From NCBI RefSeq assembly GCF_036588685.1, contig NC_086381.1:27714001-27778000 (forward strand): 64,000 nt of DNA. The letters run 5' to 3'. Numbering within the stretch: the stretch's first letter is position 1; each line of letters starts with the position of its first letter. Both the position numbers and the translations under genes were made by a program. A model generated the notes under the pieces. That model worked only from the letters and a program-made list of their open reading frames with translations, made no database searches and had not been told where the DNA came from. Of the stretch, positions 1,584 to 61,579 are shown one piece after another. The stretch comes from Mytilus trossulus. Lineage: Eukaryota.

Positions 1584-3219
1584 CTATATATCTGATGAAC
1601 GCGGCCCTAAAAGAAATACCACTGAATTTTTGATAGGTTGGACCTGATTGGTTGTTTTCGTCTAAATCCGGGAGGTAACTCTGTAGGAATTCTGTACACT
1701 TTCAATCCACTTTTTGACTGAAGCTCTGAAAATATATGAAAATAAAATATTTCAAACTGTATACAAATAAAAATACAAAGATTATAAGAGATGGACCAAA
1801 TAACTAATGATCTCCATCATCAATTAATACTTCTTATATTTTCCAATGTGAAAGAGATTTATTTCCTTTTACTTAAAATACAAGAACATATCACACTGCA
1901 TACATAAGCAGGAGTTAACAATGTGCAATTGCAATATAAAAACAATTAGTTTAAAGAAAATCTTTTTATACAGTATTTTTCTTGTTCAAAAGATACAGTT
2001 TCAGAGATAGTCCACTCTGCAGACTTAAGAGAGTAAAAGAGTAAAAACTAAACTACAGCATACCAGTCAGTTATTTAAGCATGGACAGATAGATTTGTAA
2101 ATAAAAACAGGTGTGCATGATAATTTTTCTCAAAATCACCTTTACCAGTTTCAATAAAGATGTCCCGGGAAATTCACATTTCAAACATGTTATTATTACA
2201 TGTATACAATCAATGCTCATCTTTTAACAACTAATTAGGAATCTTTCTAAATTTAGCAGCTACTTTATACATGTAGTCATAGGTTTTTGAAATGTACACA
2301 GTGCAGCCTCACTTTTTAAATACCACAATTGGTACATCATTGAATGAATGAATTATTGCGCCTTGTCTATTTTTCTCCACCAATGGGAAAAAAAGATTCA
2401 TCCGCACACATGTTCACATCATTTATAAGGCACATAGAGCACCCAAAATAGATGCATTTTAAGCACAAAATAAAGGTATTCAAGAAAAACTTCTTTCTGT
2501 AACACACAATTGATGGAGACAAAGTTTTCAATGAGAATTTAAGGTGGACTACTTGGACCCGTACCGAAAATATATTTCAGAAATATAAAATAATTGATTC
2601 TTCTCATGTTGTCACAGTAGAATACACAATATGAGTAAAAAATACATAAAAAAAGCATCTAAAAAATAAGTGAGAAAATAAGACCGAGAAAAATGCAATT
2701 TAGAGAAAAATATAACCACAGAAATTAGAAAGAAATACATTTTAATAATTCTGTAATTAGAAGATGGATTGTATTGTTCTTGGAGTATGTTTTTTCTTAC
2801 CTTTTTTTTATTTAAATGTATACATGTATGTTAATTTTTTCAGGAGGGTATACCAGAAAATGTATAACATTCTTGTTTTTTCCGAAGGATTTGGAAGAAT
2901 TAGATAAATAAAAAATATGTATGTCTCTCTATCTCTATTTATCCTTTTATTTCTCTTCTTTGCATGTTATGAAATAAGTTTCTCTATATTTTTCTTCTAT
3001 CAATACAGTAACCCGACTTGTCTAATCTTAAGTGAGTGCAAAAAAAAAAGATAATAAGAAAGAAGAATAAAGAGAGATGTGGAGAGAAAGAAGAATAAAG
3101 AAAGATGTGGAGAGGGGGTTTCAGCTATATTTGATTTTGATGTACAACATATTCAGACTCTTTTTGGAAAATATTGGTGGCCCTTAAAAGGGCCGTTATT
3201 GTATAGAGTAAAGGTCAGT

Positions 3220-3684
<465 letters not shown>

Positions 3685-4116
3685 TCAAATGTTAGTGTAT
3701 TTGTGCTAGCCGCAATGTTTGCAAACACGACACTGATTGGCCTTTCGGGGTAATAAAACTCACGTTGATTGGTTGAAATCTCTGTGTTATGATTGGACTG
3801 ATCTGGAAGTTACTTTCACAGCTTTCGATCCCTTTTTGGACTGAAGCTATGATTGTTCACCCCAAGCTAACAATTGGCACAATTTGTTTCTATTCTGATA
3901 GTGTCAGCGAAAATTTGACATAAGACCAAAAAAAATAATAATCAAGAGTAATGCAGAACTTAATAATAATCTTTATTCAAATAATAAATAATTGTTTAAT
4001 CAACAGTCTGACACGAAATTAATAATTGACAGGAAATGTAAATTAAAGAGCAAAATAGAAGAAGAAAAAAGAGAAAAAAAACATCATCCATCCATTTTCA
4101 TCAATAGCCAGTGGTA

Positions 4117-4216
4117 NNNNNNNNNNNNNNNNNNNNNNNNNNNNNNNNNNNNNNNNNNNNNNNNNNNNNNNNNNNNNNNNNNNNNNNNNNNNNNNNNNNN
4201 NNNNNNNNNNNNNNNN
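4117..4216. other. Assembly gap (100 N)
   Basis: Run of N; array orientation flips across it. Confidence 0.99.
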
Positions 4217-4308
4217 TTCCTCCTCCTTTTCTTGTCACCGCCGGGTCTGGCAGTCTTTGCCTTTGTTACGGCCTTTTTGGCTCCTTTGGTTCCAACTTTT
4301 GGTGGCAT
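4217..4308 (-). CDS. H2B: Histone H2B, 5' part only (cut by gap)
   Basis: MPPKVGTK...KKRRR then N run. Confidence 0.9.
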
Positions 4309-4970
<662 letters not shown>

Positions 4971-5000
4971 AGTCAACACTACAGAAACTTCACTTACAAC

Positions 5001-5053
5001 GGCCCTTTTCAGGGCCACCAACATTTTTCAAAAAGAATCTGACTTTGTTGTAC
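5001..5053 (+). terminator. H2A stem-loop (5001-5016), HDE-like element and TGTTGTAC (representative)
   Basis: GGCCCTTTTCAGGGCC ACCAA ... CAAAAAGAATCT ... TGTTGTAC. Confidence 0.95.
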
Positions 5054-6134
5054 AATTTAGTTGAATGCAGAAAGCAATCTCAAACATAGCTCACTCCCTC
5101 CATTTCTCTTGTCTTTATCTCTTTATTTTTCCTTTTCTTTATAAACAGCATACAGATGTCTACTTTCTAATTATATATATAACAATATTTGATGTGGAAA
5201 AAAAATGAAGAACAGTACGAGTTTCTTTTTTTCCCCTATAAAAGTCCAAGAAAATAAACGAACTATATAACGTAGATTCGATGAAAATGCGCAAGCACGA
5301 GAGGAAGAAAAACTCATAGTTGTTAGTGGTCAATGTTGCATATTTTTTTGGTGTAAATTAAGTTGCAGTCCTATATATTATACTATATAAGCACACACAA
5401 TACAATCTATGACCTTATTTTTATATAATATATATTCGTTCGTTCGTTGTCTGTCTAACTGTGATCTATGTGAATTCTTTTCTTCCTCTTCTGCTGTCAC
5501 ATTCTCTTAGATATATAATATATATTTTGTGTTCCTATACAAAGTACTTATGCGTATGTTTATAGTTGTGTAGATTATTTTTTAGCTCAAATCCTTTGTA
5601 TTTGCAAAATTCGTATATAAACAATAAAGAATACTTCAACAATGTGCAAGTTTCACAGTATGCGTGCAGTATACTATATAGAGAATATCATGGCTTTACA
5701 TGATACAGAGACTAGAGAATACAGAGACTGTATAGCTAGAGAGAACACAAAGACTATAGAGAGGATAAAAAGTGTTCTCTTTGTTTTAAGACACTGAGAC
5801 GAGTGACAATTGTGTACTATAGTAAGCATGTCTATACGAGAAACTAAGAAAACGGCTGCATTTCTATACCACTGGCTATTGATGAAAATGGATGGATGAT
5901 GTTTTTTTTCTCTTTTTTCTTCTTCTATTTTGCTCTTTAATTTACATTTCCTGTCAATTATTAATTTCGTGTCAGACTGTTGATTAAACAATTATTTATT
6001 ATTTGAATAAAGATTATTATTAAGTTCTGCATTACTCTTGATTATTATTTTTTTTGGTCTTATGTCAAATTTTCGCTGACACTATCAGAATAGAAACAAA
6101 TTGTGCCAATTGTTAGCTTGGGGTGAACAATCAT

Positions 6135-6763
<629 letters not shown>

Positions 6764-6788
6764 ACTGACCTTTACTCTATACAATAAC

Positions 6789-6841
6789 GGCCCTTTTAAG
6801 GGCCACCAATATTTTCCAAAAAGAGTCTGAATATGTTGTAC
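6789..6841 (+). terminator. H3 stem-loop (6789-6804), HDE-like element and TGTTGTAC (representative)
   Basis: GGCCCTTTTAAGGGCC ACCAA ... CAAAAAGAGTCT. Confidence 0.95.
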
Positions 6842-6868
6842 ATCAAAATCAAATATAGCTGAAACCCC

Positions 6869-6924
6869 CTCTCCACATCTTTCTTTATTCTTCTTTCTCT
6901 CCACATCTCTCTTTATTCTTCTTT
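6869..6924 (+). repeat. 28-bp pyrimidine-rich tandem duplication downstream of H3 (representative copy)
   Basis: CTCTCCACATCT(T/C)TCTTTATTCTTCTTT x2. Confidence 0.85.
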
Positions 6925-8257
6925 CTTATTATCTTTTTTTTTTGCACTCACTTAAGATTAGACAAGTCGGGTTACTGTATTGATAGAAGAAAAATATAGA
7001 GAAACTTATTTCATAACATGCAAAGAAGAGAAATAAAAGGATAAATAGAGATAGAGAGACATACATATTTTTTATTTATCTAATTCTTCCAAATCCTTCG
7101 GAAAAAACAAGAATGTTATACATTTTCTGGTATACCCTCCTGAAAAAATTAACATACATGTATACATTTAAATAAAAAAAAGGTAAGAAAAAACATACTC
7201 CAAGAACAATACAATCCATCTTCTAATTACAGAATTATTAAAATGTATTTCTTTCTAATTTCTGTGGTTATATTTTTCTCTAAATTGCATTTTTCTCGGT
7301 CTTATTTTCTCACTTATTTTTTAGATGCTTTTTTTATGTATTTTTTACTCATATTGTGTATTCTACTGTGACAACATGAGAAGAATCAATTATTTTATAT
7401 TTCTGAAATATATTTTCGGTACGGGTCCAAGTAGTCCACCTTAAATTCTCATTGAAAACTTTGTCTCCATCAATTGTGTGTTACAGAAAGAAGTTTTTCT
7501 TGAATACCTTTATTTTGTGCTTAAAATGCATCTATTTTGGGTGCTCTATGTGCCTTATAAATGATGTGAACATGTGTGCGGATGAATCTTTTTTTCCCAT
7601 TGGTGGAGAAAAATAGACAAGGCGCAATAATTCATTCATTCAATGATGTACCAATTGTGGTATTTAAAAAGTGAGGCTGCACTGTGTACATTTCAAAAAC
7701 CTATGACTACATGTATAAAGTAGCTGCTAAATTTAGAAAGATTCCTAATTAGTTGTTAAAAGATGAGCATTGATTGTATACATGTAATAATAACATGTTT
7801 GAAATGTGAATTTCCCGGGACATCTTTATTGAAACTGGTAAAGGTGATTTTGAGAAAAATTATCATGCACACCTGTTTTTATTTACAAATCTATCTGTCC
7901 ATGCTTAAATAACTGACTGGTATGCTGTAGTTTAGTTTTTACTCTTTTACTCTCTTAAGTCTGCAGAGTGGACTATCTCTGAAACTGTATCTTTTGAACA
8001 AGAAAAATACTGTATAAAAAGATTTTCTTTAAACTAATTGTTTTTATATTGCAATTGCACATTGTTAACTCCTGCTTATGTATGCAGTGTGATATGTTCT
8101 TGTATTTTAAGTAAAAGGAAATAAATCTCTTTCACATTGGAAAATATAAGAAGTATTAATTGATGATGGAGATCATTAGTTATTTGGTCCATCTCTTATA
8201 ATCTTTGTATTTTTATTTGTATACAGTTTGAAATATTTTATTTTCATATATTTTCAG

Positions 8258-26308: not shown

Positions 26309-26662
26309 TTACTTGCTGCTGGTGTACTTTGTGACGGCTTTGGTACCTTCACTGACAGCGTGCTTGGCCAATTCACCGGGTAAGAGCAGACGAACTGCAG
26401 TCTGGATCTCCCGAGATGTGATGGTAGATCTCTTGTTGTAGTGAGCGAGACGGGAAGCTTCTGCAGCGATTCTCTCAAAGATATCGTTGACAAAACTGTT
26501 CATGATAGACATAGCCTTTGAGGATACTCCAGTGTCTCTTTGTAGATGTAGATGGCATAGGATTCTCTCCTCTTCCTCCTCCTTTTCTTGTCACCGCCGG
26601 GTCTGGCAGTCTTTGCTTTGTTACGGCCTTTTTGGCTCCTTTGGTTCCAACTTTTGTGGCAT
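26309..26662 (-). pseudogene. H2B: Frameshifted H2B (pseudogene or contig-end sequencing error)
   Basis: 19-bp deletion near 26537 plus two 1-bp deletions in the CDS; more 1-bp deletions in the promoter; lies ~250 bp from an N gap. Confidence 0.55.
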
Positions 26663-26910: not shown

Positions 26911-27010
26911 NNNNNNNNNNNNNNNNNNNNNNNNNNNNNNNNNNNNNNNNNNNNNNNNNNNNNNNNNNNNNNNNNNNNNNNNNNNNNNNNNNNNNNNNNN
27001 NNNNNNNNNN
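26911..27010. other. Assembly gap (100 N)
   Basis: Run of N; orientation flips. Confidence 0.99.
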
Positions 27011-30562: not shown

Positions 30563-30840
30563 TTAATACGTTGTTTGACTTGAACAAGTATAAACAATGA
30601 TTATCCAGTTAGGTGGTATTTTACTATTTATACCCGCAAAACGGATTGAAAGATGTTTCAGTTCTAAACCAATCAAATCATCGCTTCTTCCAGGTAGTTA
30701 GGGTTGAATGTTAGAAGGGTGCTCTCTCCGAAGTTCGCGTTAAGTAAAAACTTTCAATCCGTTTAGCCGAGTATAAATAGAAATTTTTATTAACGGCCAT
30801 CATTCACTGATTACATTTCAGAGAGTATACATCTTTCAAA

Positions 30841-36157: not shown

Positions 36158-36435
36158 TTAATACGTTGTTTGACTTGAACAAGTATAAACAATGATTATC
36201 CAGTTAGGTGGTATTTTACTATTTATACCCGCAAAACGGATTGAAAGATGTTTCAGTTCTAAACCAATCAAATCATCGCTTCTTCCAGGTAGTTAGGGTT
36301 GAATGTTAGAAGGGTGCTCTCTCCGAAGTTCGCGTTAAGTAAAAACTTTCAATCCGTTTAGCCGAGTATAAATAGAAATTTTTATTAACGGCCATCATTC
36401 ACTGATTACATTTCAGAGAGTATACATCTTTCAAA

Positions 36436-41368: not shown

Positions 41369-41752
<384 letters not shown>

Positions 41753-41789
41753 TTAATACGTTGTTTGACTTGAACAAGTATAAACAATG

Positions 41790-41799
41790 ATTATCCAGT
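41790..41799 (+). repeat. Target site duplication, left copy (ATTATCCAGT)
   Basis: Identical to 49127-49136; single copy in empty units (e.g. 30600-30609). Confidence 0.95.
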
Positions 41800-41820
41800 C
41801 AACAAATGGAAGTTTTTAAC

Positions 41821-41853
41821 GACCTTGACTGGCTATACAGCCCTTGCACGGTC
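41821..41853 (-). other. Putative 3'-terminal RNA stem-loop of the LINE
   Basis: RNA GACC-G-UG-CAAG-GGCU-GUAU-AGCC-AGU-CA-A-GGUC, 21 nt from the 3' end; folded by eye. Confidence 0.55.
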
Positions 41854-42173
41854 GGCCCTGGCTTGCGCCTTTTTGGGCATTAAATAATTTATATTTTTAC
41901 CATGTGGTAATTTAAATAATTTAGAATAATAAGAAAGTTTAATAAAAACAAAAAATTTAAAAAGCAAAAATTTGGATAAATAAATGAATAAAAAAAAAAA
42001 AGTTTTAAGATTAGGTAAATAATAAAATAATAAAAAAATAATAAAAGAATATAAAAATAAATATAATAAAATAATATAGAAATAATTTTGTATAAAAATA
42101 AAAATAAAATAAAACAAAATAAATAAATAATTATTAAACACGGAGCCACCGGAAGTAGGAACAGGAGGAAAGC

Positions 42174-42236
42174 TTGGCCAAGCAAACAGCAGTGTACGGC
42201 AGCAACGTTGTCCTGGTACACCAGCAGCCAAGTAAA
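42174..42236 (+). pseudogene. Diverged fragment of the H2B 3' coding end inside the LINE 3'UTR (antisense to the LINE RNA)
   Basis: TTGGCCAAGCA...CAGTG...GTACACCAGCAGC(C)AAGTAAA is collinear with H2B 392-455; ~50/66 identical columns by hand alignment. Confidence 0.75.
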
Positions 42237-42874
42237 GAGCGGATAATTTTGATATGCCAAATTGTGTATGTGAATTTATATGCCAAATATTATGTATAAA
42301 CCACAATAAGCCTAAATTTGTGAATGTGAGTTTTGCAAAAATATTTAGTGGGATGTTTTGTATGTACTAGAAAAATGAAAAGTGAAATAAAATAAAATAA
42401 AATAAATAAAAAACCAAAGGGTGTATGTAAATTTTGACTGCTTTGTGCTAGCCTACCGTAGTTGCAGGACTTTAGAGTGCTAGTACACTGGAACACTTAT
42501 CCGCAGGAAGACAGTGCCCCACGCTAATTAAAACTGGATTAGCGCAAACCAGATCTTGCGAAGTACCATTTTTTAAGTCTTAGATTTGACTTGCGGCTTA
42601 ATGACATGAAAAATTTATATAATGACCAAAAGTAGAAACAAAAATAATTTAGGGTGCCGCGAATTTGGAAGAAAAAAACCAAAGGTTATCGTGCGTTCTT
42701 GTTTAGTTAGCATAATTCTAATAGTTTAATTAACTTATCCCTACATTCTTTTTATTTAATTCTAAATATGTTAAGTTATTTTAAATGATTAATTTTTATT
42801 ATTTTTTTTTAATTTTTTTTTTTTTTTAATCATATTTAATTTGGATTTTATTTGTCTTAAAGATTTAGTTTTTT

Positions 42875-43405
42875 ACTGCCGGTTATGGCCTGACTCCATT
42901 TCTGAGTCACTGACCGGATAACTCTTGCAGTATGTTTTGCCCCTTTAATGATGCTGTGGTAAGTCGTCTTGAAGATCCATCTGTACTGCCGGTTATGGCC
43001 TGACTCCATTTCTGAGTCACTGACCCCGGATAACTCTTGCAGAGTAGTTGGTCTTCTTAACGATCTTTTCTAGTAAGTACGTACTGTATTTGTATTGAAG
43101 ATTTGATTTTTACTGCCGGTTACGGCCTGACTCCATTTCTGAGTCACTGACCTGGATAACTCTTGCAGTGTGTTTTGCCTATTTAAAGATGTTGTGGTAA
43201 GTCGTCTTGAAGAGCCTTCTGTACTGCCGGTTATGGCCTGACTCCATTTCTGAGTCACTGACCCCGGATAACTCTTGCAGCGTAGCTGGTCTTCTTAACG
43301 ATCTTTTCTTTAGTACGTACTGTATTTGAAGTGAAGATTTAGTTTTTGACTGCCGGTTACGGCCTGACTCCATTTCTGAGTCACTGACCCGGATAACTCT
43401 TGCAG
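42875..43405. repeat. 3'UTR repeat array: five 56-58-bp cores with alternating spacers (A-B-A-B)
   Basis: Cores at 42875-42930, 42985-43042, 43112-43168, 43223-43280, 43349-43405; periods 110/127/111/126. Confidence 0.95.
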
Positions 43406-43454
43406 TGTATTTTAATTATTTTATTTCTATGACTGTTTTTTTATATATATATAC

Positions 43455-46400
43455 TTATATAAATTTATGATAATCAATTTCTGTTAAATATTGTACCAAG
43501 CACGACCAGACATATTGTTGTTTGTCTTTAGGAGGATCTAGTAATATTTTGGTATTAATATTTTGTATTTGAACCTTGTCCAAGTTTGATTGCAAATTTT
43601 GTCTCGCTTGTGAATGATTAATACAGTTTACTAGTACGTGTTCTATATCCTCTTTAATGCCGCATGTATTGCATATTGGTGAGACATTGCGTATGTACTG
43701 GCCTAGTTGCCCAGGTAATAAAGTAGTGCCCAACCTAAGTCTAGTTATTGTTTTTGCATGAAATCGATTACCTTGATAAAAGTTGGGTTTTTTATTTACT
43801 GCAGTATTTATAGAACGACTCCATATGGAGCATGTGTTATCCCATCTAGCTTGCCACTTTTTCTTATATAATGCTGTTGTTATTGCAATGAATTCGTTTG
43901 CACTAAGACTCAAGTTAAGGTCAATCTTATCATTACTTAGTGCTAATTTAGCTAGTTTGTCAACCTGTTCATTACCTAGGATACCAACATGCGCTGGTAT
44001 CCATTCTATGGTTACTTCTATATTTTTTTGTTTTAGACGACAAGCCAGTATTTGAATTGGTTCTAGGATATCGGGTCTACTTGATGCATTATTATTTATA
44101 GATTGGATTGCACTATATGAATCAGTTAGAATAACAACTTTTTGCCCTGGCTGTTGATTGGAGAATACCCACTTTAATGATTGATATATGGCCGTCATTT
44201 CTGTGGTGTACACGGAAAGATTGTCTGACGTTCGTTTATAGCTTGCAATCAACTTTGATGGGATTAGAAAAGCATATCCAGTTTTACCCGAAGCTGGGTC
44301 TTTTGAGCCATCGGTGTAAATTTTTAAATGATTTTTATATGCATTGTCGATGTACTCTAACGCTTTAGTCTTAATGATATGCGGATTTTCTTTTTTACTG
44401 AGGCTGTTTTTTATGTTACTGGATGTTTTTGCTTGACCTATTATCCATGGAGGTGGATCTTGAATATTTTTAGTAACCAACTTTATTTTGTCTAGTTCGT
44501 TATCTTTAAGTAGATTTTGGACTCTGAATCCGTAAGGTATGTTATGGTCATTCCATTTATGATTATAAATTTGATATTCAATACAGTCATCTACTAGTTC
44601 ATTGGCTGGATTTGATGGATTTTGTTTAGTACGAGCATAATATTTAAGAGAAAGGTGGTCCCTTCTTAATTGTAATGGCATTTCGCCAGACTCGGCTAGT
44701 ATTGTTTCTAACGGGGTCGATTTATGGGCCCCTAACACTATGCGAAGAGCTTTAGCTTGTATTATATCTAATTTAGATTTTACAGTTATAGATGCTGAAT
44801 TAAACGCTTGACATCCATAGTCAAGTACCGATCTAAGAAGAGATTTATATAGCATGAGAAGAGAATCAGTACCCATGCCATAATTATTTGCTTGAACATA
44901 CCTTAGAACGTTTAATATTGCTTTAGATCTTTCTAGTAAATAGTTTACGTGTTTATTCCATGTTAGCTTTCTATCAAATATGAGACCAAGAAACTTGACA
45001 TGATTCTGGAATTTGATTGGTTCGTTATCTAGCATTAGGTTAACTGAATAAACATGACGATCTCCAAATATTACTCCTATCGTTTTGGTTTTAGATATCT
45101 TAAAACCCCATTTTTTAGACCATGCACTTATATTATTAAGGGTTTCTTGCATTTTTTTTGTTAAGTGTTTAATATTTCCACCTCGGTACCACATTGCACT
45201 GTCGTCAGCAAATTGTGACATAACTGCGGGTTTTTTTGCCAGACCTACTAGATCATTAATCATGATGTTAAATAATGTGGGACTGATGACACTACCTTGC
45301 GGGATACCATTGTTTAGATCATATTCGTCTGAGGATTCTTGATTTACTTTAACTTGAATTTTTCTATCTTGCAGAAAGTCTTTTATGAAGTTAAATAATC
45401 TCCCATTTATACCGTAATCTTTGCACTTTTTTAATAGACCAAAACGCCATACTAAGTCAAATGCCTTTTCAATATCGAGAAATATGGCTAGTAGAAATTG
45501 TTTACGAACTTTAGCTTTTTTAATGTCTGTCTCAAGTCGCAGTAAGTGGTCTAATGTGGAGCGACCTTCACGGAACCCACTTTGTGTTTCATTTATTATA
45601 TTTTTCTCCGTTAGAAGATGTTTAAGTCTAACATTAACCATGCTTTCCATTAGTTTACAAAAATTTGATGTAAGAGAAATCGGTCTGTAGGATTTAGGGT
45701 CAGATTTATTTTTATTAGGTTTTAGTATAGGGATTACATTTGCATGTTTCCAGCTGTGGGGAAGTTGACCAGTTACCCACACTTTATTTATTAATTGTAA
45801 CATAATATCGATCATACTTTCAGGCATATGCTTGAACATTTCATATGTTATACGGTCATCACCGGGCGCAGTTGTCTTTTTGGTCTTAAGCACCTTATAA
45901 AGTTCGTTTTTGTTGAATGGTATATTAAATTTTGACCTATTATGTTGCTCATCATCATCCCTATTAATCGGATTTTCTATTTCGGTTTTTAATTTATGAG
46001 TTCTGAATTTGGGATCTAAGTTATTGTCACTGGATGCTTCTGCAAAAGTTCCGGCGAGCATGTTTGCTTTATCTACATTAGATACCGCTTGTTTGGTGTC
46101 ATTAATAAGTGTAGGTAGGGAGGATGATTTTGCCCCTTTAAGACCTTTAACTGTGTTCCAAACTGTTTTTACGTTAGTTTTATAGTTTAGTTTGTCACAG
46201 AAATTTTGCCAGTAGTCAGTTTTTGCCTTATCTGTGACACGTTTAAACTCCTTGACTGCAGTTTTATATAATTCATGATTTTCTTCTGATTTTGATTTAT
46301 CATATACCCTATGTTTATGACGCTTATTTTTTTTGGCATTCGTACAATTATCGTTCCACCAGGGACAGTTTTTTCTTGTATGTATAGTACCACTAGTTTT

Positions 46401-47273
46401 GGGGATTGTTTCATCTGCGATTTTAGTCACCACTTCACAAAGATTTTGATTAAAGATTTCAATATCGTCATGTTTTATATTATCTATATTTATTTCGTTA
46501 CAAAGGGTAGTGAACCTGTGCCAGTCGGCTTTATCGTACACCCACCTTTGTGGAGTGCAGACTTTATTTTTAACCGGTTTTGCATTTAACACGGTGAGTA
46601 CTGGGAAGTGATCAGAACCTAGTTGCTCATCTAAAACTGACCATTGACTGTCATTGGCTAACGATGCGGAGACTAATGTTAGATCTATTTGTGTTCGGTT
46701 GCCTGTTACAGTTTGATATGTTCCTGTACCGTCGTTTAAAATTATCATGTTATTTTGGTCTATGACTTTTTCAATTATGTTACCATTGCTATCTGTTGTG
46801 CTAGACCCCCACATCGAGGATCTACTATTAAAATCTCCAAGTAGCACTATATTATCTGATAAGTTATGCAAAACTTCTTGATATTCATCAAATTTAATAT
46901 TTTGACTAGGGGGTCTATACACATTAACTATATTTATCTTATTATTTTGACAGTTTACAGATACGCCTACTACTTCTATGTTATCAGTATTAAAATTAAG
47001 TTGTGAAAAATTAACTTGAATCGAAACATAAATTGCTACTCCTCCTCCTATTTGAGGTTTCTTTTTATTTTTACCTTTAGGTTGAATCGGTGTCTTTCTA
47101 TTTCGAATGATTGGTGGGTGGTAGCCTTGTAGTTTTATGTACCTATTATCTTTAAAACGAGTTTCTTGTACACAAATAATTTCTGGGTTATTATGTGTGT
47201 CTAAGTAATGTTTGAGGGAATTTGCGTTCGCATAAAGTGATCGCGCATTCCACTGTAAAATGTGTAGCCCCAT
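43455..47273 (-). CDS. LINE ORF2: APE endonuclease - reverse transcriptase - RNase H - C-terminal CCHC (1272 aa)
   Basis: APE: QWNARSL, CVQET, NVYRPP, GDFN, IDLTL, SDHFP; RT: YRPISLTS, QSGFR, LDIEKAFD, GIPQGSVISP, FADD, KFLG; RNase H: YTDGSK, TEMTAI, LTDS, WIPAHVGILGNEQVD; CNTC..H..C. Confidence 0.98.
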   Translation of the reverse strand: MGLHILQWNARSLYANANSLKHYLDTHNNPEIICVQETRFKDNRYIKLQGYHPPIIRNRKTPIQPKGKNKKKPQIGGGVAIYVSIQVNFSQLNFNTDNIEVVGVSVNCQNNKINIVNVYRPPSQNIKFDEYQEVLHNLSDNIVLLGDFNSRSSMWGSSTTDSNGNIIEKVIDQNNMIILNDGTGTYQTVTGNRTQIDLTLVSASLANDSQWSVLDEQLGSDHFPVLTVLNAKPVKNKVCTPQRWVYDKADWHRFTTLCNEINIDNIKHDDIEIFNQNLCEVVTKIADETIPKTSGTIHTRKNCPWWNDNCTNAKKNKRHKHRVYDKSKSEENHELYKTAVKEFKRVTDKAKTDYWQNFCDKLNYKTNVKTVWNTVKGLKGAKSSSLPTLINDTKQAVSNVDKANMLAGTFAEASSDNNLDPKFRTHKLKTEIENPINRDDDEQHNRSKFNIPFNKNELYKVLKTKKTTAPGDDRITYEMFKHMPESMIDIMLQLINKVWVTGQLPHSWKHANVIPILKPNKNKSDPKSYRPISLTSNFCKLMESMVNVRLKHLLTEKNIINETQSGFREGRSTLDHLLRLETDIKKAKVRKQFLLAIFLDIEKAFDLVWRFGLLKKCKDYGINGRLFNFIKDFLQDRKIQVKVNQESSDEYDLNNGIPQGSVISPTLFNIMINDLVGLAKKPAVMSQFADDSAMWYRGGNIKHLTKKMQETLNNISAWSKKWGFKISKTKTIGVIFGDRHVYSVNLMLDNEPIKFQNHVKFLGLIFDRKLTWNKHVNYLLERSKAILNVLRYVQANNYGMGTDSLLMLYKSLLRSVLDYGCQAFNSASITVKSKLDIIQAKALRIVLGAHKSTPLETILAESGEMPLQLRRDHLSLKYYARTKQNPSNPANELVDDCIEYQIYNHKWNDHNIPYGFRVQNLLKDNELDKIKLVTKNIQDPPPWIIGQAKTSSNIKNSLSKKENPHIIKTKALEYIDNAYKNHLKIYTDGSKDPASGKTGYAFLIPSKLIASYKRTSDNLSVYTTEMTAIYQSLKWVFSNQQPGQKVVILTDSYSAIQSINNNASSRPDILEPIQILACRLKQKNIEVTIEWIPAHVGILGNEQVDKLAKLALSNDKIDLNLSLSANEFIAITTALYKKKWQARWDNTCSIWSRSINTAVNKKPNFYQGNRFHAKTITRLRLGTTLLPGQLGQYIRNVSPICNTCGIKEDIEHVLVNCINHSQARQNLQSNLDKVQIQNINTKILLDPPKDKQQYVWSCLVQYLTEIDYHKFI

Positions 47274-47317
47274 TACGGTTAATTAATTATTTAAATTAAT
47301 TGTTGCTTATATTATCT

Positions 47318-48778
47318 TTAAATGACGTCAACTGTTATTTCTTTACCAAATTGCTCGCTGACAAATTTTTGAAAGAGTCTCATGATGGGAACAGAGATAT
47401 CCCCATGTTTGTCTGCTATATGCCGTATCTCTGTGATTAGGTTTTCCCAGTTTTTTAAATCACTAACGTCTTGACTTGATGGTTCAATTATAGTTTTGCG
47501 GATCTCTGAAATATTTTTTCTATCTTTATTAGGAATAATGGGGGTTTGATCTTCTATTTGTGTATTCTCTGTTTCAATATTTAAATTTTTATCTACGCTT
47601 ATTTCCGGATTATCTACCGGTGCCATAGTGGCTTCATTATCGCTAATTATATCCGTGTCATTGTTAATTACTTTAGATTTAACACTGTCAGCGTATGATT
47701 TACCAGGTGTGACATTTGATGTGCTAATTATTTTAGGTATGGTTTCATCATCTGACACTGGGGAGCTAATTATTTTAGGTATGGTTTCACATTTTTGTTG
47801 TGCCTTTTGTTTAGCTTGGTCAAATGACATTTTATGACTATACATATTTTCCAACACCTGTTTTTGGAATATATATTTGGGGCATGATTTATCTATTGCC
47901 TGATGTTTACCTCCACAGTTGTTACATTTTAAATTTTTTCCATTACAGTTTTTGGTTGCATGTTTACCAGCACATTTAATGCACGTATTAATAGATTTTC
48001 TGCATTGTTTGGCATAATGTCCTAGACTTGCGCATTTAGTACAGAATTTAGGGTTAGGTTTATATGGCAGTAAATCATACTCTATGTTTTGTCCCTGATT
48101 GTTTAAGGGAATAGATTTAAGAATTGAGTCTCTTTCTGATAACGTTACTAATAGATAACCAGCTTTACCTAATTGTTTTACAATTTTTATATCTGCCCCT
48201 GTTTGCCTTAGCATATTTTCCTGCTTTTTAATATTAAGAATTTCAGTATCAACAGGTTTAGGTATAACTTTATAGACTCTATTTTTAGTAACCTTATTTT
48301 CGTTAATTTCCTTTGTAGCAGCTGCTTGAATAGTTATTTTCTGCTTATGGTCAGTATCAAATTTAGACACTTTTATTTGGAAATTACCCAGTTTAGTCAG
48401 GCCTAGTAACTTTCTTTTTATGGTTTCAGATGGTGCGTAAACCAGCACACTGTTTTTAAGTGGTTTTATTTCTATAGCTTGATCATTAACACTTCCTATC
48501 ATGGTTATTAGCAGATAATGGAGAGAGTTAAGGGTCAGAAGCATGAACTTTTTTGCCCTTGATGTTATGATTAGTGTTTCACTAGGGGGAAACATTTTTT
48601 TGCCCTTATCATTGAGTGACACAGGGCTTTTATTTTTGGTTTGGCTTGATTCTTGCCTTTTTGGATATTGTATTGGCGAATTGCCTTGACTTTGTTTGTA
48701 AATTTTGGAATCAGGTGATTCCCCTTGTTGTGGACTTGTTGAGTCGATTTTCCTTTTGTTGTTTGTCATATTGTTCAT
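47318..48778 (-). CDS. LINE ORF1, gag-like nucleic-acid-binding protein (486 aa)
   Basis: Three knuckles CX2CX4HX4C, CX2CX3HX4C, CX2CX3HX6C; ends 44 bp upstream of ORF2. Confidence 0.95.
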   Translation of the reverse strand: MNNMTNNKRKIDSTSPQQGESPDSKIYKQSQGNSPIQYPKRQESSQTKNKSPVSLNDKGKKMFPPSETLIITSRAKKFMLLTLNSLHYLLITMIGSVNDQAIEIKPLKNSVLVYAPSETIKRKLLGLTKLGNFQIKVSKFDTDHKQKITIQAAATKEINENKVTKNRVYKVIPKPVDTEILNIKKQENMLRQTGADIKIVKQLGKAGYLLVTLSERDSILKSIPLNNQGQNIEYDLLPYKPNPKFCTKCASLGHYAKQCRKSINTCIKCAGKHATKNCNGKNLKCNNCGGKHQAIDKSCPKYIFQKQVLENMYSHKMSFDQAKQKAQQKCETIPKIISSPVSDDETIPKIISTSNVTPGKSYADSVKSKVINNDTDIISDNEATMAPVDNPEISVDKNLNIETENTQIEDQTPIIPNKDRKNISEIRKTIIEPSSQDVSDLKNWENLITEIRHIADKHGDISVPIMRLFQKFVSEQFGKEITVDVI

Positions 48779-49091
48779 ATTTAATATATCTTAACTTTTA
48801 ATTAAATTTATTAAAGCAAAAATAGATGAAACTTTAGCCAATTTAAATATTTAATACTTATTTAGCAAAAATATTAAATTATTTAAACTTATTTAGCAAA
48901 AACAAAGTTTAAAACCTAAAGATTAAAAAAAAATTAATTTATGAACTTACAAAGAAATAATAAAAAGAAGTGAAATTGAACTTAAGTAAAAAATAAAAAT
49001 AAAAATTATTTTAAATGCTAACTAAACAATTTAACAAAAAATAAACAACAGACCGTAATCTTCTCCTGTAATTGCTTTGAGATCGACGCGT

Positions 49092-49126
49092 ACGTGTTGA
49101 CTCGACGACGGCAAGCTAAGGAGTGA
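49092..49126 (-). promoter_or_regulatory. LINE internal Pol II promoter: Inr TCACTCC plus DPE ACACGT
   Basis: With A49124 as +1, G lies at +24 and ACACGT at +28..+33, matching DPE consensus DSWYVY at the canonical spacing. Confidence 0.65.
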
Positions 49127-49136
49127 ATTATCCAGT
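49127..49136 (+). repeat. Target site duplication, right copy (ATTATCCAGT)
   Basis: Identical to 41790-41799. Confidence 0.95.
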
Positions 49137-49151
49137 TAGGTGGTATTTTAC

Positions 49152-49159
49152 TATTTATA
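49152..49159 (-). promoter_or_regulatory. H2A TATA box now directly upstream of the LINE 5' end
   Basis: TATAAATA on the minus strand, starting 35 nt upstream of the LINE Inr A. Confidence 0.85.
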
Positions 49160-49367
49160 CCCGCAAAACGGATTGAAAGATGTTTCAGTTCTAAACCAAT
49201 CAAATCATCGCTTCTTCCAGGTAGTTAGGGTTGAATGTTAGAAGGGTGCTCTCTCCGAAGTTCGCGTTAAGTAAAAACTTTCAATCCGTTTAGCCGAGTA
49301 TAAATAGAAATTTTTATTAACGGCCATCATTCACTGATTACATTTCAGAGAGTATACATCTTTCAAA

Positions 49368-49742
49368 ATGCCACCAAAAGTTGGAACCAAAGGAGCCAAA
49401 AAGGCCGTAACAAAGGCAAAGACTGCCAGACCCGGCGGTGACAAGAAAAGGAGGAGGAAGAGGAGAGAATCCTATGCCATCTACATCTACAAAGTCTTGA
49501 GACAGGTTCACCCAGACACTGGAGTATCCTCAAAGGCTATGTCTATCATGAACAGTTTTGTCAACGATATCTTTGAGAGAATCGCTGCAGAAGCTTCCCG
49601 TCTCGCTCACTACAACAAGAGATCTACCATCACATCTCGGGAGATCCAGACTGCAGTTCGTCTGCTCTTACCCGGTGAATTGGCCAAGCACGCTGTCAGT
49701 GAAGGTACCAAAGCCGTCACAAAGTACACCAGCAGCAAGTAA
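49368..49742 (+). CDS. H2B: Histone H2B
   Basis: Canonical 124 aa. Confidence 0.99.
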
Positions 49743-59847: not shown

Positions 59848-59947
59848 NNNNNNNNNNNNNNNNNNNNNNNNNNNNNNNNNNNNNNNNNNNNNNNNNNNNN
59901 NNNNNNNNNNNNNNNNNNNNNNNNNNNNNNNNNNNNNNNNNNNNNNN
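59848..59947. other. Assembly gap (100 N)
   Basis: Run of N; orientation flips. Confidence 0.99.
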
Positions 59948-61302: not shown

Positions 61303-61579
61303 TTTTGACAGATGTATACTCTCTGAAATGTAATCAGTGAATGATGGCCGTAAATAAAAATTTCTATTTATACTCGGCAAAACGGATTGAAAGTTTTTAC
61401 TTAACGCGAACTTCGGAGAGAGCACCTTCTAACATTCAACCTAACTACCTGGAAGAAGCGATGATTTGATTGGTTTAGAACTGAAACATCTTTCAATCCG
61501 TTTTGCGGGTATAAATAGTAAAATACCACCTAACGGGGTAATCATTGTTTATACTTGTTCAAGTCAAACAACGTATTAA

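Follow-up and report, generated by a model that had tools for sequence, protein, structure and literature searches.

A LINE inserted in one histone H2A promoter of the mussel Mytilus trossulus is real and intact, and it belongs to a family, here called A, that repeatedly inserts about 15 bp downstream of TATA boxes, just before the transcription start. Histone promoters are thus one multicopy case of a promoter-directed landing preference. Literature searches found no histone-targeting or TATA-targeting LINE. The DNA analyzed (the window) is a 64,000-nucleotide stretch of the RefSeq assembly GCF_036588685.1, contig NC_086381.1, positions 27,714,001 to 27,778,000 of the forward strand. A preceding sequence-only reading had noted the element in the window and proposed that it may represent a new lineage specialized on histone genes. 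The insertion it described is confirmed by our analysis, whereas its view of the element as a histone specialist is only partly supported.

An intact LINE in an H2A promoter

The element spans 7,327 bp and lies in H2A sense between the TATA box and the initiator of an H2A gene. Profile searches against Pfam identified Exo_endo_phos (6.9e-17), RVT_1 (7.1e-38) and RNase_H (4.7e-16) domains in ORF2, in the order expected of an APE-type non-LTR retrotransposon with an RNase H domain downstream of the reverse transcriptase. In ORF1, a CCHC zinc knuckle scored 17.1 bits against a Pfam cut-off of 20.8, a weak match that does not settle whether the knuckle is genuine. The perfect 10-bp target-site duplication (TSD), ATTATCCAGT, occurs once at each uninterrupted H2A promoter in the window, and the sequences flanking the insertion are identical to those of the empty repeats. 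The sequence-only reading counted 1 of 10 visible H2A promoters as occupied; genome-wide, this becomes 2 filled sites against 24 exact empty H2A sites, although such copy counts are approximate because the histone arrays contain N gaps and orientation flips. Contigs from public sequencing runs showed the empty H2A site, other flanks of the element’s 5′ end and the H2B start site, but none of the contigs listed bridged the junction in the window, so that read-level confirmation of the junction is missing. Features of the element and its surroundings are listed in Table 1.

Table 1 Features of the LINE A insertion and its surroundings (window coordinates)
Position	Strand	Feature	Details
41800..49126	-	LINE A, full length	7,327 bp; the only copy with both ORFs open among the genome matches that were scored
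41790..41799	-	Downstream TSD copy	10 bp, ACTGGATAAT in element sense; ends one base before CATTG of the H2A initiator
49127..49136	-	Upstream TSD copy	10 bp
49152..49159	-	H2A TATA box	TATAAATA in H2A sense; 15 nt upstream of the TSD and of the first-strand nick, 25 nt upstream of element base 1
48779..49126	-	Element 5′ UTR	First bases (TCACTCC) resemble an initiator and occupy almost the position of the displaced H2A initiator; promoter use is inferred
47318..48778	-	ORF1	486 aa; weak CCHC zinc knuckle
43455..47273	-	ORF2	1272 aa; APE endonuclease (aa 6-225), RT (522-765), RNase H (982-1111), C-terminal zinc-finger-like stretch (about 1196-1226)
42849..43413	-	Tandem repeats in the 3′ UTR	Element positions 5714-6278
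42174..42236	+	Short diverged stretch resembling the H2B C-terminal coding end plus stop codon	Antisense to the element; within the 3′ region that aligns in all 12 copies compared there
41800..41855	-	3′ terminal module	About 56 nt, ending in (TTG)n; occurs alone about 616 times in the genome as mini-insertions
41813..41819	-	TTAAAAA in the tail	After insertion about 31 nt upstream of the host initiator A, the usual TATA position; function inferred
41369..41746	-	Histone H2A gene	TATA box separated from the start site by the insertion; putative +1 A at 41788, by analogy with H2B
49368..49742	+	Divergent histone H2B gene	RNA reads end at 49329, the A of TCATTC, which marks its start site
36195..36204	-	Example of an empty target site in a neighboring repeat	Others at 30600 and 54722, and reverse-complemented at 4540, 10135, 15727, 21322 and 26892

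Family A is dispersed through the genome

The sequence-only reading had specified in advance that its proposal would fail if most copies had unrelated flanks without enrichment in histone repeats and if no independent, for example differently truncated, insertions shared the site. When examined, these two conditions gave opposite answers. Family A has at least 118 body-bearing copies and about 616 tail-only insertions on all large contigs, and most flanks are not histone DNA. Of these 734 tails, only a few tens are at histone or X sites (X is a dispersed repeat, described below), and thus A is not a histone specialist, even though its enrichment in histone repeats is real. The later censuses rest on the letters returned by pattern searches. 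The 5′-truncated copies start at element positions 2300 to 6926 and all end at 7327. In contrast, independent, differently truncated insertions do share the H2A site, as shown below. Targeting is therefore real, but the target is wider than histone genes.

Recurrent insertion at the same promoter position

Another H2A repeat, at C9:27655466-27655542, carries a 34-nt insertion of a sister tail type, A′, with the identical TSD. In H1 promoters, a 5′-truncated A was found with its first nick 10 nt upstream of CATTG, the same offset as in H2A, and an A′ copy sits at the same offset at C139:23093. Moreover, an unrelated LINE, B, occupies 10 H1 promoters at that spot; with 10 of its 28 tails in H1 promoters, B comes much closer to a histone (H1) specialist. 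Both array stretches of 60-64 kb that were read, the core-histone window and a 60-kb H1 stretch, show no other break in their regular gene spacing except at assembly gaps, so every insertion found there is at a start site. Searches for the tail next to H2B/H4 or H3 leaders found no real hit; the one match (L042) contains neither a histone gene nor the element. The chance expectation for two random hits at histone -12 sites is about 1e-10.

Repeat X has the histone-type promoter motif, a TATA box and TCATTTG. At least 10 of its copies carry A insertions at T^CATT with 10-bp TSDs, and 33 empty X sites were found. Locus-specific TSD variants are mirrored in both TSD copies and insert lengths differ (48-61 bp, 274 bp, more than 1.5 kb), indicating that these are independent events. 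Rfam found no RNA family in X. A scan of X sites for other families gave a blank result, which is uninformative because the search pattern excluded a preceding G, the base in which both the empty site and the A tail end.

Insertions at a fixed distance downstream of TATA boxes

We next searched the genome for TATAWAWA followed by a gap of 16-40 nt and then the 23-mer of the tail. Of the 67 sites found, 51 fall in a 6-nt band (binomial P about 4e-19), and the DNA between the TATA box and the insert is unrelated from site to site. The mirrored antisense pattern gave 15 sites with no peak. Only exact 8-mer TATA forms were counted, so the targeted share of all insertions was not measured, and whether the TATA sites outside histone genes and X are real promoters was not tested. 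Mini-insertions at L038 and L041 show a TATA box, then 15-18 nt, then a TSD, followed in L041 by CATTC. Among the body-bearing copies that could be checked, L001, L007 and L022/24 have a TATA or TATA-like box 14-16 nt upstream of the nick, and L003 has TATAAATA exactly 25 nt before its 5′ end. However, several body-bearing copies (L002, L010, L018 and L020) have no TATA box at the expected distance, so targeting is a preference and not a rule. A metagenome scan for TATA-plus-tail sites found nothing.

Proposed mode of integration

Based on these findings, we propose, with good but not complete confidence, that integration of family A is directed to TATA-box plus initiator core promoters in the direction of transcription. 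In this model, the first nick, on the template strand, falls about 15 bp downstream of the TATA box, near -12, and the second nick falls about 10 bp further on, immediately 5′ of the initiator CA. The 10-bp duplication would preserve the TATA-to-start spacing, so that the element’s own TCA start takes the place of the gene’s initiator and the host TATA can drive full-length element RNA (promoter capture). Histone H2A and H1 promoters would then be multicopy, tolerant instances of this target and not the target itself. The positions, orientation, duplications and recurrence of the insertions are observed directly in our data, whereas use of the host promoter and the way in which the site is recognized are inferred; transcript, TBP-binding and nicking data do not exist for this element. 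We favor tethering to TBP/TFIID or to the opened pre-initiation complex over direct reading of DNA, because the bases at the nick vary while the distances to TATA and to the start site are kept.

A broader possibility, which we regard as tentative and somewhat less likely than not, is that several LINE lineages in Mytilus read Pol II core promoters through the pre-initiation complex (TBP/TFIID or the opened bubble), nicking the template strand at about -12 and the other strand at -1. They would thereby take over the host TATA box for their own transcription, while their tail supplies a replacement TATA-like box to the host gene. This would be the first Pol II promoter-tethered LINE integration system, with histone arrays serving as its long-term reservoirs of full-length copies.

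Known site-directed LINEs use rDNA, telomeres, small-RNA genes or microsatellites, and known factor-tethered retroelements use Pol III genes. A LINE family that lands with nucleotide precision between the TATA box and the start site of Pol II-type promoters would be a new target class. It would give a route by which a promoter-less LINE obtains transcription, explain why full-length copies gather in histone arrays, and predict hundreds of small insertions that re-wire core promoters in a bivalve genome. It would also offer a natural system for studying how an APE-type endonuclease can be positioned by a transcription complex.

Alternative explanations

The endonuclease or another element-encoded domain might instead read DNA directly (a TATA-like box and/or the CATT initiator) and cut at a fixed distance, with no host factor involved. 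Consistent with this possibility, distances to the TATA box (13-18 nt) and to CATT (10 nt) are fixed while the bases at the nick vary, and tail-only arrays suggest that the tail’s own TTAAAAA re-creates a target. However, no extra DNA-binding domain was detected beyond the zinc-finger-like stretches, and the accepted TATA variants are loose, including the poor H1 box. Furthermore, A and B, which share 34% ORF2 identity and are not sister lineages in a 42-row FastTree of database hits, use the same H1 spot, which fits a property of the target complex better. We consider direct reading possible but less likely.

A true histone-gene specialist, recognizing histone promoter sequence and with other copies off-target or old, is improbable for A. 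The two H2A and two H1 hits by A and A′, the location of the only fully open copy in H2A, the short H2B-like patch in the 3′ UTR and the strong H1 association of B are in its favor. Nonetheless, about 118 body-bearing and about 616 tail-only copies lie outside histone arrays, members of the youngest A subclade (L010, L018 and L020) sit at non-histone sites, many targeted sites share only a TATA box with histone promoters, and no hits were found at H2B, H3 or H4 start sites. The census thus largely refutes this reading for A, whereas for B it holds in part.

Random insertion with survival limited to tolerant tandem arrays is very improbable: histone arrays and X repeats are redundant, so insertions there should be nearly neutral, but tolerance would spread insertions over the spacers, whereas all those seen in the arrays are at one nucleotide position and in one orientation, single-copy TATA sites are also hit at fixed spacing, and the positional precision contradicts chance. 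An assembly artefact or chimera is equally improbable, because, despite three N gaps with orientation flips in the window and the lack of a bridging contig, the insertion lies in gap-free sequence between 27010 and 59848, its TSD is perfect, its flanks match the empty repeats, and an independent insertion with the same TSD exists elsewhere in the array.

Relation to known retroelements

The arrangement is reminiscent of Dictyostelium TRE5-A, an APE-type LINE with fixed-distance, orientation-biased integration next to a transcription complex, whose ORF1 protein interacts with the TFIIIB subunits, including TBP (PMC5911963, PMC3159450). TRE5-A, however, targets Pol III (tRNA) genes, about 50 bp upstream, whereas the targets here are TATA-plus-initiator promoters of protein-coding (histone) genes and repeats, and the insertion lies between the TATA box and the start site; interaction of an element protein with TBP/TFIID was neither assayed nor modeled. 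Yeast Ty3 likewise integrates with nucleotide precision at a transcription start set by a TBP-containing factor, TFIIIB (TBP plus Brf1) (PMC5911963), but it is an LTR element that uses an integrase and targets Pol III genes, whereas the present elements use target-primed reverse transcription.

SLACS/CRE/CZAR and NeSL-1 in spliced-leader genes, R1/R2 in rDNA and Utopia/Keno in U2 snRNA genes are LINEs resident in multicopy tandem genes, which insert in sense, close to or inside the transcribed start, and rely on the host gene’s promoter. Those elements recognize one defined sequence and nearly all copies sit there, whereas family A hits many unrelated promoters and many non-promoter sites. Histone genes do not appear among the targets in two papers that list target-specific LINEs (PMC4640811, PMC5035012; no occurrence of “histone genes”).

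In domain order and short-repeat 3′ ends, (TTG)n in A and (TAA)n in B, the elements match I/Nimb-like LINEs; a CCHC knuckle in ORF1 would match as well, but in A its score lies below the Pfam cut-off. Such elements are usually described as not site-specific, and the remark to this effect in the sequence-only reading does not hold for family A. Clade placement against named reference RTs was not carried out, the database relatives found being unnamed or auto-named.

Further features of the element

The hairpin in the 3′ tail folds no better than shuffled sequence (z 0.23), and no structural claim is made for it. The sequence-only reading had also cited an H2B-like piece in the 3′ UTR as pointing to histone specialization, a claim that needs qualification. 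A protein-level search for H2B inside the element found nothing. At the nucleotide level, only a patch of about 63 nt is present, which is short and diverged but scores above shuffled sequence (43 against a maximum of 32 in 200 shuffles).

An intact LINE between the H2A TATA box and initiator

The 7,327-bp element in the window, designated A, is a non-LTR retrotransposon. Its ORF1 encodes 486 aa with a weak CCHC knuckle, and its ORF2 encodes 1272 aa with APE endonuclease, reverse transcriptase and RNase H domains and a C-terminal zinc-finger-like stretch. The closest named proteins are from Mytilus; no reference RTs were used for comparison, and the element was not assigned to a clade. The element is flanked by a perfect 10-bp duplication, and this 10-mer occurs once at every uninterrupted H2A promoter of the 5,595-bp histone repeat. 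The element lies in H2A sense, with the H2A TATA box 15 nt upstream of the duplication and the end of the duplication one base before CATTG. In an RNA-seq run of a related species, 126 RNA read ends pile up at the A of TCATTC upstream of the neighboring H2B, giving an experimental start site for this gene and indicating that CATT is the initiator in this group. The element ends in (TTG)n, with no poly(A) tail.

The insertion described in the sequence-only reading was thus confirmed in the assembly, although no listed read contig bridged the junction. The recent insertion inferred in that reading is supported by the perfect duplication, the open ORFs and the single occurrence of this junction in the assembly. 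Among the matches scored, the window copy is the only one with both ORFs open.

Coordinates of the features described (contigs are denoted C and genomic loci L)
Feature	Location	Strand
LINE A	window 41800-49126	minus
10-bp duplication copies	window 41790-41799 and 49127-49136	
H2A TATA box	window 49152-49159	
H2B start site (A of TCATTC)	window 49329	
H2B-like piece in A	window 42174-42236	antisense in the element
Variant repeat at the target site	window 61533-61542	
Diverged H2B fragment next to a gap	window 26309-26637	
N gaps with orientation flips	window 4117-4216, 26911-27010 and 59848-59947	
H2A repeat with 34-nt A' insertion	C9:27655466-27655542	
LINE B	C1:4939745-4946166 (L035:3746-10000 plus L031:1-167)	minus
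H1 arrays	C1:4771194-5197383, C139, C442	
Tail-bearing insertion of about 2.9 kb	near C1:4825765	
Repeat X	L046:1170-2357 and L043-L054	
Tail insertion downstream of a TATA box	C1:10524243	
Full-length A copy with extra 5' bases	L002 (C1:71755848-71763112)	
Amplified ORF2 piece	L012-L019 and L026 (for example C13:51258172-51259897)	
Tandem tail arrays	L040 (C10:74252246-74255276); C1:101257381-101257607	

Family A is dispersed, but its H2A insertion is not chance

The proposal that A is a histone-gene specialist was only partly supported. Two observations had been named in advance as counting against it: unrelated flanks for most copies without enrichment in histone repeats, and the lack of independent insertions sharing the H2A site. 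With respect to the flanks, a whole-genome search gave matches on most large contigs, which are typical 5'-truncated copies that all end at element position 7327 and have unrelated flanks. A 23-mer of the tail occurs 734 times, and only 118 of these occurrences carry LINE sequence just upstream. The other roughly 616 are tail-only insertions of about 56 nt, starting near element position 7272 with 1-6 extra bases; these counts rest on exact-match patterns, and most mini-insertion sites were seen only as the letters returned by the pattern searches. In a tree of 3' regions, the window copy groups with the H1-array copy and with three copies at non-histone sites. Family A is therefore not a histone specialist.

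By contrast, independent insertions at the shared site were found. Another repeat of the same array carries a 34-nt insertion of a sister tail type (A', ending in a TA repeat), flanked by the identical 10-bp duplication. Moreover, in a tandem H1 array on contig C1, a 5'-truncated A copy (positions 2300-7327, 99% identical) sits in H1 sense, with its first-strand nick 10 nt upstream of CATTG, the same offset as in H2A. The 5' side of this copy is joined to the preceding H1 coding region, and 1,843 bp of the repeat are lost. An A' copy sits at the same H1 position on contig C139. H1 genes form very large separate arrays with two unit lengths (about 2,342 and 2,360 bp), in which a further tail-bearing insertion has a recurrent foreign flank.

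A different LINE, B, also occupies H1 promoters. B is 6,422 bp long, with open ORFs of 419 and 1273 aa, the same domain order, a (TAA)n tail and the 5' end ATCATTGG; its ORF2 is 34% identical to that of A, and the two are not sister lineages in a tree with database relatives. B is inserted in H1 sense 11-12 nt upstream of the H1 CATTG, and its tail abuts that H1 sequence at 10 places, three of them as head-to-tail B-B pairs. Ten of its 28 exact tails and 8-9 of about 11 full-length copies lie in the H1 arrays. In the two stretches examined (about 124 kb of histone arrays), gene spacing is regular apart from assembly gaps, and every insertion found is at a start site. The counts given here rest on exact-match patterns and on an assembly whose histone arrays contain N gaps and orientation flips; within the window, repeat orientation flips at each of the three N gaps and partial genes abut the gaps, which looks like scaffolding of collapsed arrays and not like real inversions. 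The chance expectation for two random hits at such positions is about 1e-10.

Repeat X is a third multicopy target

Searching for the tail followed by TCATT revealed a strong excess at a 9-nt gap (15 of about 80 sites, P 6e-7). Most of these sites belong to a dispersed repeat, X, which is partly arranged in tandem with a period of about 1.8 kb. X has internal short tandem repeats and a 16-bp-stem palindrome upstream, but no long ORF and no Rfam RNA family, and we did not identify what it is. Its promoter region carries the same 25-nt motif as the H1 and H2B promoters (GGGTGCTCTC...CGCGTT, 378 genome hits), followed by GTATAAATAG, with TCATTTG 24 nt further on, constituting a histone-type promoter.

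Seven X copies carry mini-insertions of 48-61 bp, one carries 274 bp, and one carries more than 1.5 kb of A. In all of them the insert sits at T^CATT, and a 10-bp duplication was found in the eight copies where both flanks could be read. Site variants specific to a locus appear in both duplication copies; each insertion therefore duplicated an already diverged site, which means that the events are independent. B also hits this X site once, and thirty-three X sites are empty.

Tail insertions lie preferentially at a fixed distance downstream of TATA boxes

A search for a TATA box (TATAWAWA) 16-40 nt upstream of the tail 23-mer gave 67 distinct sites, of which 51 fall in a 6-nt band (P 4e-19; still 4e-16 after removing X sites). 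This band corresponds to about 15-16 nt of spacer, a 10-nt duplication and a few filler bases. The DNA between the TATA box and the insert is unrelated from site to site, so the TATA box belongs to the target and not to a transposed unit. The mirrored arrangement, with the TATA box downstream in antisense, gave 15 sites and no peak.

Individual sites support the same geometry. The C1:10524243 site has TATA, 16 nt, an 11-nt duplication and then CAGTC; locus L041 has TATA, 18 nt, a duplication and then CATTC; and locus L038 has TATA, 15 nt and then an 11-nt duplication. Among the body-bearing copies, L007 has TATAAATA 14 nt upstream of the nick, and L003 has TATAAATA exactly 25 nt before its 5' end, as in H2A. 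However, L002, L010, L018 and L020 have no such box. The rule is therefore a strong preference and not an absolute one.

Proposed mechanism of promoter-directed insertion

Our data directly establish the positions of both nicks relative to the TATA box and the start site, the sense orientation, and recurrence across unrelated promoters and across two LINE families that are not sister lineages; what follows from these on promoter use and site recognition is inference. We propose that the 10-bp duplication keeps the TATA-to-start distance, so that the element's own TCA start (A) or ATCATTG start (B) sits where the host initiator was, and the host TATA box can then drive full-length element RNA. 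Such promoter capture would explain why full-length and open copies gather in histone arrays. The tail contains TTAAAAA about 31 nt upstream of the displaced host initiator, which may act as a replacement TATA box for the host gene. It may also re-create a target, which would fit the B-B pairs and the tandem arrays of the tail unit alone (62-68-bp periods), in which units are separated by TATTAG-like spacers and A and A' tail types are interleaved.

The bases at the nick differ between targets while the distances to the TATA box and the start are kept, and both families share the H1 spot. We therefore favor positioning by a promoter-bound complex (TBP/TFIID, or the opened bubble, whose edges lie near -12 and +1), a mode of recognition that was not assayed here, over direct DNA reading.

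This behavior is reminiscent of TRE5-A and Ty3, which show fixed-distance integration next to a TBP-containing complex (PMC5911963, PMC3159450). It also resembles that of spliced-leader and rDNA LINEs. The latter live in multicopy genes and use the host promoter. It differs from TRE5-A and Ty3, and likewise from the spliced-leader and rDNA LINEs, in target class (TATA-plus-initiator promoters, histone genes included) and in being a preference and not an exclusive specificity. We found no description of a histone- or TATA-directed LINE in the literature searched.

Additional features of the element and the histone repeats

The sequence-only reading took an H2B-like piece in the 3' UTR and an altered target in a variant repeat as further signs of histone specialization. 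The H2B-like piece is present: it is short and about 70% identical, with an 11-mer and a 20-of-21 block in register, and it beats 200 shuffles. It sits within the 3' region that aligns at 92-99% in all copies compared. We assign it no meaning, although it may be a relic of past contact with a histone repeat. The variant repeat has ACGGGGTAAT in place of ACTGGATAAT at the target site, which says nothing either way about targeting.

The full-length copy L002 has 26 extra bases, starting with CATTC, between its TSD and the normal 5' end, and it looks as if its template RNA started at an upstream initiator in a parent locus. In addition, a 1,726-bp piece of ORF2 (element positions 3185-4910) occurs at least 9 times at 98-99% identity, always with the same foreign flanks, and seems to have been captured by another repeat and amplified with it.
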